Shown piece after piece: positions 47,535-56,600 of a DNA stretch of 64,000 nucleotides (positions are counted from its first letter, which is position 1; each line of letters starts with the position of its first letter). The notes under the pieces are model-generated. The model was given only the letters and a program-made list of their open reading frames with translations. It had not been told where the DNA came from and made no database searches. Location of the stretch: positions 2,604,001 through 2,668,000 of the forward strand of contig BQFW01000004.1 of assembly GCA_020891255.1 (NCBI GenBank). Reading direction: 5' to 3'. A program made the translations under genes and the position numbers. The stretch is from Entomortierella parvispora E1425. Its lineage: Eukaryota > Fungi > Mortierellomycota.

Positions 47535-48925
47535 ATGGTGCGCACCCCTCTCATGCTAGAATGTCTGCCAGTGACTCTGAATTGCTCACCCACAAAGTAC
47601 TATGGCTGACCTGGACTCCATTGCTTGCCATCCTGTAGATCCGCAGACAGACTCGCCTCCGCCGGGAATACCTCTACAAAAAGTCCCTTGAGGGCAAGGA
47701 GAGACAAATCTTTGAGAGGAAACAGGCCGTCAAGGATGCCATTGCCTGTATGTTTTCCGTTTTCTACTTTCTTGGATCTAAAAAGGGGAGCCCTTTTTGT
47801 GGTTGATTCCTTGACTTTTCGAAAAGAAGAGTCGGCTATGAAAGACGGATCATGGACACTCACCCACATCACTTTTCTTTTTCGGAAACTTAGCTGGAAA
47901 GCCTGTCCCCACAGAGTTGAGAAACGAGGGAGCACAGTTCACAAAGGATTTGCAGTACGATGAGGCCCAGGCTGGTAAGGACCAAGGATATGGCTACATC
48001 TCATTTCACATGTGCCTTCATCACTTCATCACCTGTATCGTGTTTCTAACTGGCTTCGACCTTCTTGTGCAAACAAACTCGATCCAACCCACCCAATTTG
48101 ACGACTGCTTTGACTATCGACTCATTTCACAGACCCCACCAGCCACATTGACGATGAATACGCACGCGCTGGTGTCTATGACCCCAAGGTCCTCGTCACC
48201 ACCTCGCGTGACCCCAGCAGCCGTTTGCAGCAGTTTGCCAAGGAGATGCGCCTTGTCTTCCCCAACTCTCAGCGTATCAACCGTGGAGGACATGTCATGA
48301 AGGAGATTGTCGACGCTTGCAAAGCCAACGATGTCACGGATCTGATCATTTTGCACGAGCATCGTGGAGAGCCCGACGGCATGATTGTGTCTCATTTCCC
48401 TCACGGACCAACAGCGTTCTTCACATTGAACAATGTGGTGTTGCGACATGATATCAAGGACCACGGTACGGTCTCGGAGGCGTTCCCCCATTTGATCTTC
48501 AACAACTTTTCGAGCAAGCTGGGCAAGAGGACATCGGATATCTTGAAGTACTTGTTCCCTGTACCCAAGGAGGATTCCAAGAGAGTCATGACCTTTTCGA
48601 ACGACAACGACTTTATCAGTTTCAGACACCATGTCTTTATCAAGACAAGCCACAAGGATGTGCAATTGGCCGAGGTTGGACCCCGTTTTGAGATGAAGCG
48701 TAAGTCAAATCAATTGATATCGGGAGACAGAAGAAGATATCAGACTATCTGGGTTGTTTTTTTTCCGAGCTGAAATGCTTACAAAGGACCTTTTTTTCAT
48801 TCAATCTTGCTTTCCAACGAATAGTCTTCCAGATCAAGGCAGGAACTGTCGACTTGAACGATGCAGACACAGAATGGGTCTTGCGTCCATACCAGAACAC
48901 AGCCAAGAAGCGTACTCAGTTGTAG
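47535..48925 (+). CDS. IMP4: U3 snoRNP protein Imp4 (Brix domain), 5 exons
   Basis: Exons 47535-47537 (ATG only), 47639-47748, ~47893-47971, 48133-48700, ~48825-48925. M|[58 protein letters not shown]. Confidence 0.95.
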
Positions 48926-49335
48926 AAGAACTCTTCTCTGTCTGCTTCGTCTTTTACGCTTGTCTAATATCGCATTACCCCCTCCACACCATGGCATTTC
49001 ATCTTGATCTTACTCTTTCACTTGTATATTAAACGTCATTTACCCGACAGCGACACGTCTGTTTTTCATGGTGTGTTAGATACGAGCAACAGATGAGAGG
49101 ATGAAGACGGTATGGATGTGAACGCCCAGAAAAAAGAGGGGATCCTTTTTTGTTCTTTTTACCAGAGAAGCGCTTGTTGTATTGATCTGCGACTACGAGA
49201 CCCAGATTTCAGCATTTACGTTCGAGACTGATCGTCACTTGTCCCCCCTTTTCACCCACATGCCTTCCTATTCCCATCGAGCATGGGCCAAAGTTGATAA
49301 ACTCACGCTACCGTTGGAATGTCTTGAGTTCGGAA

Positions 49336-50321
49336 ATGAACAGTGAACACCGAGGATTGGAACGTAGGGCTAGGAAACAAGCTCTTATGAAAGATCTGCG
49401 TCTTGTCATCGCTCTTATTCTTGAAACTTCCCCGCCCTCGGAGGCACTCCTCACTCACTTGTCTCTCTCTCTCTTCTGTCTCTCCTTACTTTCTGTTCTT
49501 TTGTTTCTTTCACGACATTTTTTTTTCTTCTATCCACAAGAGCTGCCGCTTCTCCCGTTGTCCATATCCGGACTTCACCAGCGCTACTATCAGCACCTGC
49601 TTGATATACACAACATGTTGCGCTATAAACTGAACAATTGCCTTGACGTAGGTTCCATGATATTCACTTATCTCCCATCTCCCATCTTCCATCTCCCATC
49701 TCCCCTCCCAATGCCACCACTTCATGGAAACGCAGTCTAGTTCGCTTATACATTTTTTCCCTGTACAAACCTCCGTTCTCGATCTAATTTAGCAATTGCC
49801 AACAGCGACCAATCCAACTCGCTGTCGGATCCTTTTGGCCAATGTTTTGATCTTTTGTGAGGATCTCGAACTACATCATGATATTGAAGAAAAAGTCGTG
49901 TTCCCACCTTTTTCAGGTCAAGACCGATATCTCGCACTGGAGTCGATCCCATGAGGCCTTGCACAGTACCCTGGAGAGCCTTCGGCGACTGGCTAGAGCT
50001 GGATTACAGCACGTGGGCAGCGAAGGGACGGGTATGGGTCATGGATGGATCTCGGTGGAGGAGGAACGCACCGGAGAGGAAGGAGGCGCATCGAGTGGAG
50101 AAGCAGCAGCAACAGTAACAGAAATAGTGGCTGCTACTGGTATTAGATCAACGGGGTTGAATCAGGACCAACGGGATGCGATCGTAGCCGAGTTGCGAAA
50201 ACTAGAAGAGATTACTCTGCCACATTTGGTAGATGAAGAGGTGATGAGTCAACCCGAAGAACTGGCCAAGCTTTGGCCGACTGAACAAGACTTTCAAATT
50301 GCGTTTCCGTGGACGAGGTGA
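49336..50321 (+). CDS. Hemerythrin (HHE cation-binding) domain protein with an internal +1 frame discontinuity near 49907-49916; may be a pseudogene or an assembly error
   Basis: Proposed exons 49336-49363, 49541-49647, 49793-50321. Ligand helices: IHNMLR, LHHDIEEKVVFP (frame A), then SHWSRSHEAL and LPHLVDEE (frame +1). The summed exon length is 664 nt = 221 codons + 1. The first exon is the least certain. Confidence 0.75.
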
Positions 50322-50668
50322 AGTGAGAATCAGGACAATCTCCTTTCTTTGACCAGTTCCCGGCCCACCATTGCTCTATTTAATACCGTACAAACGACAG
50401 AGTGGCCTCAGTCTCCATAAAGATTGACCTTCTCCACTATCAAAACAGTCATCCACTGCGAAACTAGAAGATTGCTGCACCCACTTTGGAAAAACTCTCA
50501 TCCTCCAAGATTATCACGCGTGAAAACGCGAAAAAAAATCATGACCGCGTGCATGGGCGGCAGTGACTCGATCGTCAACAATGACAATCTGATCGCAGAC
50601 AAAGAGAACCGATGCAAACCAAAGAGTAAAGATAACAATAATTTATGATATAATTCACGTTTTCCCTC

Positions 50669-53600
50669 CTACTCGATCAAAAACAAGCGACCAGTTTTTT
50701 GCTTCTCGGACGCGTCCAGTACCACAGGGTGCACTTTTTGCACATCGTGGACAATCTCCAACAGCTCGCTCTTGCCCTCGCCCGTTGACCCGCCGATGAT
50801 CTGGCTTCCGCTGGCCAATCTCCAGAGGACTTCAAATACGGGTTTCCGTCCGCTCACACCAAAGGGAGAGCGGTCTTGACCGTGTCCTGAAGCCTTCCAT
50901 TCCTCAATCGCTTTTTCGACTTCGCCCAATTGCTTGATACATTCCTTCTGGAAAGCCAAAAGGCCATCTGAGACGGGAGGTGACAAGGCAGACTGCGAGA
51001 TAACTCGTTCCAAAGATCGAGTGCAGAGCTGGAAGGACACCAAAGGTTCGCGGTAAAGGTTGGGCGATTCCTTGTCAAAGAGCATCTTGCTTGGCTGTAA
51101 TGACTCGGCAACGATGCGAGCTGTAAAGAATAAAGTCATGAAGTAAAAAGGAGTATTAGATCAGGTTTGCTATGGAATCGTGTACCGAAAAAAAAAAAAA
51201 AAAAAAAAAAAATACCTGGCTTTCCAATGCCCATGAAGCTCGAGACAAGCGACTCAATCAGAAGCTGCACCTGAATCTCGTTCGCGTTCTGTCCAGCAAA
51301 CATCTTGAGCTGCTGATCGTACACCAGAGTCAGGGCCTTCTCAGATGAGACACCATAAGGAAGCTGGATACCGAGCGACACAATGCGAGCGGCCTCCTCG
51401 CGGACCTCCTCCTCGTCATCCTGAAGTTGCCAGGTCAAAGTCTCAAAGAGTTTCAAAAATGCTCGTGTCTTTTCCACACTTGGCGTTGGTTGAGTGGGGT
51501 CCAAGAGCTGGCCAGTGAAGCAGGCAATGGACTCCAACGCGGCCTCACGAAGCTGAAGGGTCTATATTCGTTTGAGAAAACACGCAGGCAAAAGCGTGTG
51601 TTGTTAATAAGGAGAACATAGAGCCATCAGCAATTATTGGCTTTGCTAGAAAGAGCATTATCTTACCTGGTACTCGTTTGCGTGCTTGTGAATAGAGTCT
51701 GCCCATCGGTTCAAGCAGTCGATTCTCAATGGTTCAGGAACACTGGAGTCATTCCAAATCTATCAAAAGGAAAAAATCTGGTTAGAGCCACGCTCATGAA
51801 ACAATATCCCTCGGATATGATAATGCCTCCCTTCACTTACTTGAACAAAGACAGCTCCTGTAGCAGGCAAGATAGCCTCGACGACAGCGACACCTCCAGT
51901 AGCCTCATCGTTGATCCTCATAAAGAGTCTGTTCCAGAACTCGACAATGTTGACGGAAGATCCAGTGGGGAAAGGCGTCTTCTTGCCTCCAAGGCTCATT
52001 ACCAACGCAACCTCGGCTCTCAAGCACTCCAAGTTCTCCTCACCCTTGAACAGGCTGTTGATCAGCGTGTTATGAATGCTACGCACATCCAGGCGAGAGT
52101 GAACGCCCTCTTTGTTGTTCAGCAGTTGTGCTTGAAGAGTCTCTAGAGTCTCCAGACGGACTTCATAGTCTGCATCCTTCAGCAGGTTGCACACCATAAC
52201 ACTCGCTTGATCCTTGCCCAGGGCTCCGTTCTTGCCCAAGGCTGAAGCAGAAATCATGATGCGAGCCATCAAACGGCGAACGAGATGACCCCCAACCTGC
52301 TGGCGGTAGGTCAGACTTTCCTCCATCAATCCAACGACCGAGTGATCGACAATGAAATCACGAATACCCTTGAAGTGCAAATCACTCAAGCGTCGCATCT
52401 CCTCGCGTTCGGATTCCATCTCCATCTCTGCACCTTCTTCCAGCTCTACAGAGTCTTGTCCCATCCAGTCTTCGGAAAGAACAAACTCGGCATAGATCGA
52501 CAACACCATCCAACGGTTCAACTGGCATCCTGTCCTGAGCACACGTTCAGTCACGGGTCCAAATGCGTTCGCGAATCGGGTCACAAAGGCCTGACGGACC
52601 ACCCGATCGGCAACACCTTCGCTCAAGAGGTGGCCACGAAGAAGGAACTGAACCTGGACCAAGAGACCATGGGTCTCATTCTGCGAAATCTGAGACTTTA
52701 AGCATCCGTTCAAGATATCGACCACTAGATCCATCAAGTCCCGAGACGCCACCAGGGGAATCAAGGCTCTGGCAGCCATCTCGCGTGTCTTCCAGATAGC
52801 ACTGGCAGCACAACGACGCACCAAGACCACGAAAGCAGACATGCCTCCGTCGATCGCATCTGCAGGGTCAGCGTGAAGACTGGGTTGGAGGCGAGACAAC
52901 AACGTCAGAACAGGGTAAAGACCAGGGTGAACACGGTCCTGGGAGGCATCTGTGCCCAAAAGTTGACCGACGGCGACCTCCAGTTGCTCCTGCAAAAATC
53001 CGCAGAGTCCCTCAAGACGAGCAAAGAGCTCGCGACTGGCAATGCCGTTGATGGCCTGATGCTCATCACGGACTCTCTTGGCTCCGAAGACACGGTGCAA
53101 CAAAGTCGAGAACAACATCATACCGCAGTTACGGACAGCCCATGAAGGAGAAGAGAAAGCTCGGATAGAGAGCTCGAGTCCCTGACCCACATAGGGCAGC
53201 ACTGAGGTGCTCAGCTTTGCGTCCATAAACAGCTTTCGCAAGACGTTCATGGCGTGAATCTGAGGCAGATCAACTTGTTGGTTGGCATCCGCACTAACAG
53301 GCTTGACCGCAATGGCCATAACGCGACGCATGACCATAGGAAGAAGGGTCCTCCTGCTGTCTGAAAGTTCCGCATTCACAATGGCCAAGATGCAGAGAGG
53401 CAAACCAGCAGAACGACGGGTAACCGAGATGGTATCGCTCAAAATAGAATCCAAGTTCTCCTCCAACCATGCTCTGGGCAAAGCTGCCAATCCTGCGTCT
53501 TCCGAGTTCAAAAGTCTCGTGCATAACGAAATATAGGCAGGGAAGACGGAAGAGAAGGCGCCGGGATGACGGATAGTAGTCAAGAGTCTACGGAAGAGCC

Positions 53601-56600
53601 CTCCAGCGCGCTCAAGAGCAATAGGCTCCAGAATACCATCGACCTTTCCAGAGCTGCTTCCCAGCGTGGCCTTGGAGAGAACCAACTCCATCAACGAAGA
53701 CGACTCCTTAATGGCTCGCCAGCAATAACTGAGAATGACTTGGTGGTTAGGACCTCCACTTTGCTCAAACTCGTCTCCTCCAGAAGAGCTAATCACAGCA
53801 TCGATCGACTCTTCCATCTCTGTAAAAGTAGCGGGGATGTTGCCTTCGGGAGAGGGGTTCGAAAGAACACCCATGACGACCGAGCACACCATTTCTACCA
53901 ATTCCATCATGTCTGCATGGATGGCTTGCCAGAGTGGTCGATGGTTCGTGACAAGAGGTGAGGCGTAATCGATAGAGGAGAAGAGATAGCGCAGGCCAAT
54001 AAGAGTTCCGTGCATTGGGTAGTTGTGAGCGGCATCCAGTTGGTTCAGTCTAGCATGCTCGAGTTGAATCCGAAGCAAATTCTGGAGTCGGATGGTAAAG
54101 TCAACTAGTAGTAAATGGGGAAAGGGAAGTGCAGTAATGGCAAGTTAGTATAACTAAAGCATTGGAAGTCACCCCACAGACATATTGTCATGGGCCACAA
54201 AAAAAAATACCTGCTGGGACACCGGTGTCCTTGGCAAGCTTGATGTTTGTCAAATCCACGGATCCATCGTATGGGAGCTGGATATCCCAACCAAGCTCAA
54301 TAGCATACTTGACAAAGATGGTCTTCAAGACCAATCCACCAGAGTCACTTTCGCCAGCGCGAGTACTCTTCAACCAGTCCAAGCCCCAACGAACTAAACC
54401 GTCAACGGCCTCCTTTGATTGATATCCAGTGAAAGGGGCCTTGAAGGCCATCAAGATCTCAAAAGCTTGCTCTCGGCAGTGGTCGAAAGGGTTCAACAAA
54501 CATCCTAGCAGGATCTTTGTATGTTCTTCGTTTGCGATCGGGAGCTGGAATGGGAATCGAGAAATTTCGCCAGGCTTGGATCCTGGAGGCAGGGGTGTCG
54601 ACTCGATTCCAAAGGTTTTGATCATCACGCCCAAAAGTCTCAAACTGGTGGAAACACGCTGGAAAGAGGCGCCTGGGTAGATGGATGAGAAGCAATGGTT
54701 CAACAGCCATTCCAGGAATGATTTTGTCTCGGCGACCTTGACTTCCCGCTCTTTGATCATTGCAGCCACATCATCCTGAGTCAAGTTCTTTTGACCCACG
54801 GGGGTATGAAGACGAGCAATCTCTCGAGTGAGCACATAGCAGTTGCCTCGGACACGGAACAAGAACTTTGCCAGGTGAGAGTACAGCTTTTGACGGAAGT
54901 CTGGAGTCACTGAGTTCAGGTTGAGTGGGAGGAACTGCATCAGTAGCTCGTACTCAATAAGAGCAACAGGCGTAGTGGATTTCCTGGACTCGCACAAAAT
55001 TCCCATTACGTCAATACGAATGTCTCCAGAGGCATGGTGCATCGCAGCATGAAGGGTCGAGATATTAATTGTCCGTTCCAAAGCGCCCAAGTGAGATCCG
55101 CTAGCCGAGGTCTTCGAATAGTGGCTGGCGTCGATCAGATCCAAGGAGCGAGCAGTTTTGATGGAGAGAACAATGGCATTGAATCGGTATTGTTCCTCTG
55201 TGATATATCCACTGTAAGCGCTGTTATCCTGCTCGTTCAAGACGCCCAGCAGAGTCCAGAATGCTTCCTTGCAGGTCGAGAAAAGCGGCGAGAAAATGAA
55301 GTGGCCAAGATGCTTGCGGATCAAATCGTTATCGGTTGTAAGAGCTTGGGTGATGGGCTTCAGCCAGAAGTCAAGCCATGGCTGGATAGCCTTTTGACGA
55401 GCCTCTTGCTCCACCTTGGGGTCGACAGTTGAGACTTCAGCCGCTGCTGCCTTCATTGCCCTTTTGGAGGTTGGTGTTGACAGGACATTGGCTCCTGCGG
55501 CATCGATGGCCAGGCATTCTTTCCATGACTTTTCGATCATTGCATTGATTGCTACGGCTGCTCCTGGGGCGGTTGCGAGCTGTTCCAAGGCCAAAATAGC
55601 CTGGGCAAGCGCGTCGTGTCGTAATTGAACGACTTCATTAATCGAGACGCGATGAACTAAAATAGCCAAGATGGGGTGTTTTGATTTGCGATGTCCATCT
55701 GCCATGAGGATACGCTGAAGCAGTTGCAGGACAAATGGTGGTGTCGAATGTTGTCCTTGGAGCTCAGCCTTCAAGAAGACAATGTCCAAAAGAAGATCCA
55801 GAATGTTTTTGACCTTGTGCTGCACAGTGTCGACTGGATCCTCCCAATAGTCGAGTACGTATGTAGTAAGTCGCTCCTGTGCCTGGTCGTTGATGCATTC
55901 TGCCAAAGCATTCTTCATTTCTGCAGAGGCAGTAGACTTTTCGCCTAAATGAAGCTTTGTCTGTTGGAGCCAATGACCCATTGTCTCGAACGCGCTCGTT
56001 TTGCTGGACATGTCCTTGGAGGTCGCGCACAAAAAGGCAATGGCGTGGAAGAGCACTTGATGCAACATCAGTCCATGCTTGTTCATGTCGTGAAAGACTG
56101 CAGGTGCGTACCACTGCTCAACTTCTGTCACCGGCATCACCAAGGCTTCCTGACGGATATTGGTCAACAATCCACGGACGATCCCCAGCATGTACATTCC
56201 TGCATCCTCCTCGCCTGGGCCGCATTTTTCACCAAGGTAAGTATTCCAGCCATAGTCCATTTCGATCATGGTCCTTGGAATCTCGGGGAGGTATGTGAGG
56301 TCCTGACCGTTCAATCCAAACACCAATCCGACGATGCGACTGGTGGCTTCCTGTACAGATGGTGATGTGAGATCCACAAGATTGGCAAAGACCATGCCAG
56401 AGATTGAAGAAACGTCGCGATGGTAGACTGCTGAAGAGGACACTGTAATGGCATCCTTGAGGATTCTCAGAATGTAGAGCTGAGGGTTGTGTGTTGAAGA
56501 TATTTCAAATTTATGGGTGGATCCTGACTGGCTCCCGTTGGTGACGATCAATCTGGAGATGATGGCGAGAATCAGCTTAAGGATAAATTCCAGATCCAGC

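Follow-up and report, generated by a model that had tools for sequence, protein, structure and literature searches.

The hemerythrin fold carries a di-iron site that is built by ligands from all four of its helices. The nearest solved structure found for our model of a paralogue of the gene studied here is the hemerythrin domain of FBXL5 (PDB codes 3v5x and 3v5y), but that domain is part of a multidomain F-box iron sensor, whereas the Mortierellaceae proteins are stand-alone domains that are predicted to bind metal. Genes whose full protein depends on a change of reading frame are known from yeast, in which EST3, ABP140, OAZ1, Ty1 and Ty3 need a programmed +1 shift for which the P-site codon can re-pair; these shift sites are conserved among species and are followed by a slowly decoded codon or a stop codon. 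Bailly et al. 2008 (PMC2556348) surveyed putative fungal hemerythrins, reported them from Ascomycota and Basidiomycota only, and described them as alike among themselves and as 'substantially different from other Hrs'. The proteins in that survey are small, as are those of the Mortierellaceae family, which is a likeness of description and not one of compared relatedness.

The single-domain proteins of the Mortierellaceae, among them Linnemannia schmuckeri BG015_006327, Podila verticillata MVEG_03484 and two paralogues in the same genome, have the same domain and start position as the gene described here. This hemerythrin-like (Pfam PF01814) gene occupies positions 49564-50321 (+) of a 64,000-nucleotide stretch of the Entomortierella parvispora E1425 assembly (hereafter, the window), and its frame is broken at a run of five T (49909-49913). 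The blocks HxxYY..L..IH, HHDxEE..FP.F, TDISHWSxSH, LPHLxDEE and WPTE..AFPW are common to the window copy and the Mortierellaceae proteins. Compared with those proteins, the window copy has ATA at the start position and one extra T, and it has a loop, found also in a metagenome orthologue, that is absent from the 158-residue proteins. Like the yeast +1 genes, it would need a +1 shift to yield the full protein, but the site is absent from its nearest relatives and the next codon is a common one. With a probability of roughly 0.8, we consider the locus to be a recently inactivated copy, either a young pseudogene or a null allele, of a single-domain hemerythrin-like gene.

Translation and the family alignment delimit a first coding exon (49564-49647 (+), 28 codons, ISGLHQRYYQHLLDIHNMLRYKLNNCLD) that contains helix 1 and the first His ligand, H16, which is nearly invariant in the family alignment. 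It is followed by a phase 0 spliceosomal intron of 145 nt (49648-49792 (+), GTAGGT...TTTAG), the position of which is shared with relatives: the codon boundary matches that of a 97-nt intron in the metagenome orthologue and that of an intron in one of the paralogues (contig 10), and the protein alignment is continuous across it. The first part of the second exon (49793-49912 (+), frame 0, QLPTAT...FCEDLELHHDIEEKVVFPPF) encodes helix 2 with its HHxxEE ligands. Continued in frame 0 from 49793 to 49954, the translation is QLPTAT...LELHHDIEEKVVFPPFSGQDRYLALESIP (in full, QLPTATNPTRCRILLANVLIFCEDLELHHDIEEKVVFPPFSGQDRYLALESIP), and it ends at a premature TGA (49952-49954 (+)) after 13 out-of-frame codons (SGQDRYLALESIP) that follow the last in-frame Phe. 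The remainder of the exon lies in the +1 frame (49914-50321 (+), QVKTDISHWSRSHEAL...LPHLVDEEVM...AFPWTR, with the stop codon at 50319-50321) and encodes the second half of the domain, namely helices 3 and 4 with the remaining His and Glu ligands, together with a lineage-specific loop of about 45 residues that is rich in Gly, Glu and Ala. A first-pass annotation of the window, made from the letters alone, had described both the frame 0 stop at 49952-49954 and the second half in the +1 frame up to 50321, as translation confirms, and had pointed out that no single open reading frame displays this gene; indeed, the whole domain is in no one open frame.

To place the gene in a family, we searched the genome (G000; 38.9 Mb in 20 contigs) in six frames and found two further copies, one on contig 2 (2742.1-2742.6 kb) and one on contig 10 (82.3-82.7 kb), both of which are intact. 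These paralogues score 50.5 and 42.6 bits, respectively, against PF01814 (cut-off 25.3), and the contig-2 paralogue spans positions 4-122 of the 127 in the profile. When the pieces of the window gene were scanned separately against the same profile, only 49793-49951 matched, at 19.8 bits (cut-off 25.3). The pieces are clearly homologous to the in-genome paralogues (E values of 2.9e-12 and 3.8e-8), and the window copy is 48-52% identical to the contig-2 paralogue. The second half (49914-50321) is 57% identical, with an E value of 1.8e-37, to the metagenome orthologue P0001, which is encoded at positions 302-811 of a metagenome contig (L007, from ENA ERZ27249417). The ligand pattern H...HxxxE...H...HxxxE is retained in the window as the His of IHNML, HHDIEE, a His in ISHW/SH and the H..DEE of LPHLVDEE, all in alignment columns with a conservation of at least 90% across the family. 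The first-pass annotation had recognized this HHE pattern (H...HHxxEE...H...HxxxEE) and had taken the two pieces as halves of one domain, an assignment that the 30-row family alignment and the PF01814 matches of the paralogues bear out.

The contig-2 type of protein is spread over many Mortierellaceae genera (Linnemannia, Mortierella, Podila, Entomortierella, Actinomortierella and others), its nearest named relative being a Linnemannia protein with 85% identity, and it appears in databases as 'hemerythrin-like domain-containing protein' or 'hypothetical protein'. The Mortierellaceae proteins are thus already public under domain-level names, and the locus in the window is a frameshifted copy. 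Protein searches by word index, with the C-terminal piece or P0001 as the query, returned P0001 only and no more long-loop orthologues, and neither of two metagenome scans, which used the piece and a two-sequence alignment as their respective queries, found a relative. One further locus in the genome (L006, G000:C9:676435-676650 (-)) matches residues 33-103 of the second half weakly (E = 0.036, 35% identity) and has one internal TGA. The region that it matches takes in the low-complexity loop; the match is probably due to chance, although L006 could be a fourth, degenerate relic.

We assessed the four-helix bundle on a model of the contig-2 paralogue, not of the window copy. The AlphaFold model, made with the family alignment, has a pLDDT of 93.2 and helices at residues 3-32, 36-69, 75-100 and 107-134. 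Its best structural overlaps are with FBXL5 hemerythrin domains (TM-scores of 0.63-0.70), for which the Foldseek E values are only 0.1-0.5. Weak Foldseek E values are usual for helical bundles. A Foldseek search of the PDB with this paralogue gave nothing at E <= 0.001, with hemerythrin domains ranking by TM-score alone, and a PDB sequence search with the paralogue gave no meaningful match. On this model, the break in the window copy maps to the end of helix 2, directly past its terminal Phe, so that a frame 0 product would consist of helices 1 and 2 only. The long-loop region that is common to the window gene and L007 (window 50016-50165) falls between helices 3 and 4; this is the loop of about 45 residues that the 158-residue family members lack. 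At the same site, the 230-residue Podila proteins (P0027-P0029) carry a different, acidic insertion, and they have another between helices 1 and 2.

The nature of the break is defined by the alignment. The three pieces of the window gene (49564-49647, 49793-49912 and 49914-50318) tile the 30-row family alignment without gaps or overlaps, and FPPF runs directly into QVKTDISHW at the break, where other rows have FPxF and then xxVTDISHW. Such exact tiling means that exactly one base is extra. The proposal in the first-pass annotation that one additional nucleotide lies between the ligand-bearing helices was therefore correct, as is also apparent from the relatives with four T.

A homopolymer of five T is a typical site for a long-read indel, and the assembly, with only 20 contigs, was probably built from long reads. 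The extra T could accordingly be an assembly or sequencing error in a strain that truly has four T and an intact gene, which was the first explanation offered by the first-pass annotation. We compared the window with a sequencing run from the probable source sample (X1) in the form of Logan contigs, a k-mer assembly and not raw reads. An X1 contig of 5,375 nt (word depth about 80) matches the window at every position of 49000-50700 (1,701 bases, 0 gaps), and both the five T and the ATA are present in it. That a separate k-mer assembly has the same five T makes a homopolymer slip by the assembler unlikely; the change of ATG to ATA is a substitution and not a slip of this kind, and the occurrence in X1 of a substitution and an indel 345 bases apart argues against a sequencing artefact. 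The X1 reads look accurate from the contig statistics (41.7 Mb in total, 81,024 records, the longest of 46 kb). Another run of that sample, X3, has no contig over the gene, a gap that carries no weight in either direction. X1 may be the assembly's own sample, in which case the match confirms the reads and does not represent a second isolate, and contigs hide minority alleles, such that a minority T4 allele in other nuclei is possible. On balance, we regard an error as unlikely.

The relatives bear both on the age of the lesion and on the more elaborate explanations for it. A second data set (X2), obtained in a separate study from a separate sample under the same organism label, is approximately 8% diverged from the window (95 substitutions and 39 gap letters over 1,187 bases; depth 109). 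X2 is without one T at 49910, which leaves four T and a continuous frame. The metagenome contig L007 reads CCACC-TTTT-CAA (TTCCCACC-TTTT-CAA) and encodes FPPFQSKTD (VVFPPFQSKTDIAHWSRSHEAL) in one frame. At the break, the contig-2 paralogue reads FPAFAAVTDISHW (within ...HHDLEEAVIFPAFAAVTDISHWSHSH...) and the contig-10 paralogue reads FPSFAAVTDISHW (within ...HHDVEEEVVFPSFAAVTDISHWSHSH...), both uninterrupted, and the frame is likewise uninterrupted at this point in all 26 full-length Mortierellaceae family proteins (24 plus the two in-genome paralogues).

These comparisons weigh heavily against programmed frameshifting, which the first-pass annotation had put forward as a +1 slippage of tRNA-Phe on CCU-UUU-U that would regulate the ratio of a half-length to a full-length protein. 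The UUU-U sequence does permit perfect re-pairing of tRNA-Phe in the +1 frame, and the downstream frame is intact with all of its ligands kept. However, the site is not conserved, given that X2 and L007 each read through four T in an unbroken frame, and the next 0-frame codon, UCA, is common (in the window's long open frames, which amount to 7,264 codons, it accounts for 19% of Ser codons and for 23 codons per thousand), so no 'hungry' codon is present at the shift site. We also looked for structure downstream of the site, where 87 nt fold no better than shuffled sequences (z = +1.0). The start codon is lost as well, which suits decay and not regulation. The first-pass annotation had itself named uninterrupted orthologues and an unconserved slippery site as grounds for abandoning this idea, and both are what we find; we consider programmed slippage highly improbable.

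A third proposal, that the frame is restored by a GT-AG micro-intron of 19 or 22 nt (49898 or 49895 to 49916), appears barely credible. Either length would restore the frame, and the stretch begins with GT and ends in an acceptor-like CCTTTTTCAG before a G, but splicing it out would cost the protein its Phe-Pro pair (F65 and P66), two residues with a conservation of 90% or more, and would shorten a segment of fixed length in the family. The confirmed introns of the gene and of its orthologue are 145 and 97 nt long, and the relatives need no intron at this site.

The window copy has a lesion beyond the one noted in the first-pass annotation. In the alignment column that corresponds to window 49564-49566, each of the 26 full-length relatives, paralogues included, has Met (M-x-x-[FL]-H-Q-x-Y-Y). 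The window has ATA (Ile) at this position (49564-49566 (+)), whereas X2 has G at 49566, which gives ATG, and L007 has ATG at the aligned place. Judged by this alignment, the start codon of the family has been lost in the window copy. As X2 is without both lesions, they postdate the split from X2, and they are derived and private to the lineage of the assembly.

Loss of this codon does not by itself have to disable the gene: the 127 codons that precede 49564 in this frame contain no stop, and translation could start at either of two in-frame ATGs (49336 and 49387). The stretch concerned (49336-49563 (+)) is CT-rich, and the first-pass annotation had assigned it a first exon (49336-49363) and an intron (49364-49540) ahead of the intron at 49648-49792. 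Of its two introns, only the latter stands, on the strength of the shared boundary in L007 and in the contig-10 paralogue. An N-terminal extension matching 49336-49563 was found in none of the 26 full-length relatives, and an A>G change at 49539 in X2 removes the A of the proposed AG acceptor. Moreover, the proposed intron (177 nt) is in frame and free of stops, and is thus not needed to link 49336 to the domain. In L007, an in-frame stop lies 22 codons upstream of the ATG with no ATG between them. In X2, 415 letters that cannot be aligned replace window 49172-49507 (336 bases), and 21 bases are inserted after 49102, which indicates that the intergenic or promoter region upstream of the gene evolves fast. 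We conclude that 49336-49563 probably does not belong to the coding sequence of the family but forms a promoter or 5' leader.

The open upstream stretch nevertheless leaves room for the gene to be used in an altered form, in which translation from 49336 or 49387 would yield a shortened protein of two helices, whether or not an unprogrammed +1 slip occurs from time to time. Helices 1 and 2 retain their ligand residues, and a half-protein perhaps pairs into a bundle. Against this, the stretch resembles a leader, is not conserved in X2 and is absent from every relative, and the di-iron site takes ligands from all four helices. We think such use quite unlikely. It is very unlikely, in particular, that the T5 allele is live, whether as a newborn recoding site that combines an upstream ATG with low +1 slippage or because the two-helix half has a role of its own.

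Both parts of the frame carry the mark of a gene that was recently functional. For the window and L007, with the pieces joined for the calculation (Nei-Gojobori), dN/dS is 0.12 over the 68 codons before the break and 0.16 over the 130 codons after it; dS is approximately 1.4-1.7, which is near saturation, so that these ratios are rough but their direction is clear. The near-invariant residues are all still present in the window copy. By this measure, the +1 frame was a coding frame, and purifying selection acted on it during almost the entire period since the window and L007 diverged; the low ratios, together with the retention of all ligand residues, indicate that the break is recent. The frame is otherwise clean, and a very recent or still-segregating allele would look the same as a fixed pseudogene. 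Private lesions, intact relatives and a lost start codon together favour recent pseudogenisation, the second explanation in the first-pass annotation, over the others that it listed.

Constraint on this branch of the family may have begun to loosen before the frame was broken. In P0001, the second His of the HH pair is Arg (LEHHRDIEE versus LELHHDIEE in the window, 49874-49879) and the helix-4 His, at least 90% conserved in the family, is Tyr (LSYLVDEE versus LPHLVDEE, 50221-50226). Loss or alteration of the metal site may thus be under way in the long-loop branch even in copies with an unbroken frame. In X2, the near-invariant Tyr8 is replaced by Cys (49586 A>G), and Gly stands in place of the Cys of FCEDLE (49856 T>G). 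Among the 55 X2 codons for which differences were listed, 3 changes are synonymous and 5 are non-synonymous (start codon counted), figures that rest on 40 listed substitutions of 100. The X2 changes hint at relaxed constraint in this species group and, taken with the two His residues absent from L007, raise the possibility that the whole orthologue group was already under looser constraint. Constraint thus seems to be loosening in several lineages of the long-loop branch, with a broken frame here, ligand His residues replaced in L007 and conserved residues changed in X2.

We therefore propose the following history for the inactivated copy. In relatives, the gene has two coding exons, with an ATG aligned with 49564, an intron at the place of 49648-49792 and an end that corresponds to 50321, and its product is a four-helix bundle of approximately 200 residues with His and Glu ligands across all four helices. 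In the lineage of the assembly, the start codon changed to ATA and a T was inserted into the T4 run at the end of helix 2. Translation would then end 13 out-of-frame codons past the insertion, before helices 3 and 4, which would leave any product with half of the predicted metal site at most. We infer that function was lost, and that the loss is tolerated since two intact paralogues remain.

The flanking genes are ordinary housekeeping genes, which indicates that the locus does not lie in a decaying or transposon-rich region. Upstream is a Brix-domain ribosome-biogenesis gene (48228-48773 (+); PF04427, 103.7 bits), and downstream is a Trm732/THADA gene (51766-54078 (-); PF10350 and PF25151), the 3' exons of which are probably the open frames at 50669-51537 (-). 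The findings have little significance beyond annotation. The locus is best annotated as a frameshifted pseudogene or null allele, with neither a micro-intron nor an N-terminal exon invented to mend it, and it offers a worked negative case, in which a test for recoding on orthologues came out against recoding. The wider comparison shows that a small family of hemerythrin-like proteins, each a stand-alone domain, is retained in the Mortierellaceae.

Within the confirmed intron, a CCCATCT-type simple repeat (49673-49708) also matches unrelated contigs of X1 and X3, with 4 mismatches in 36 bases, and the repeat has several small deletions in X2.
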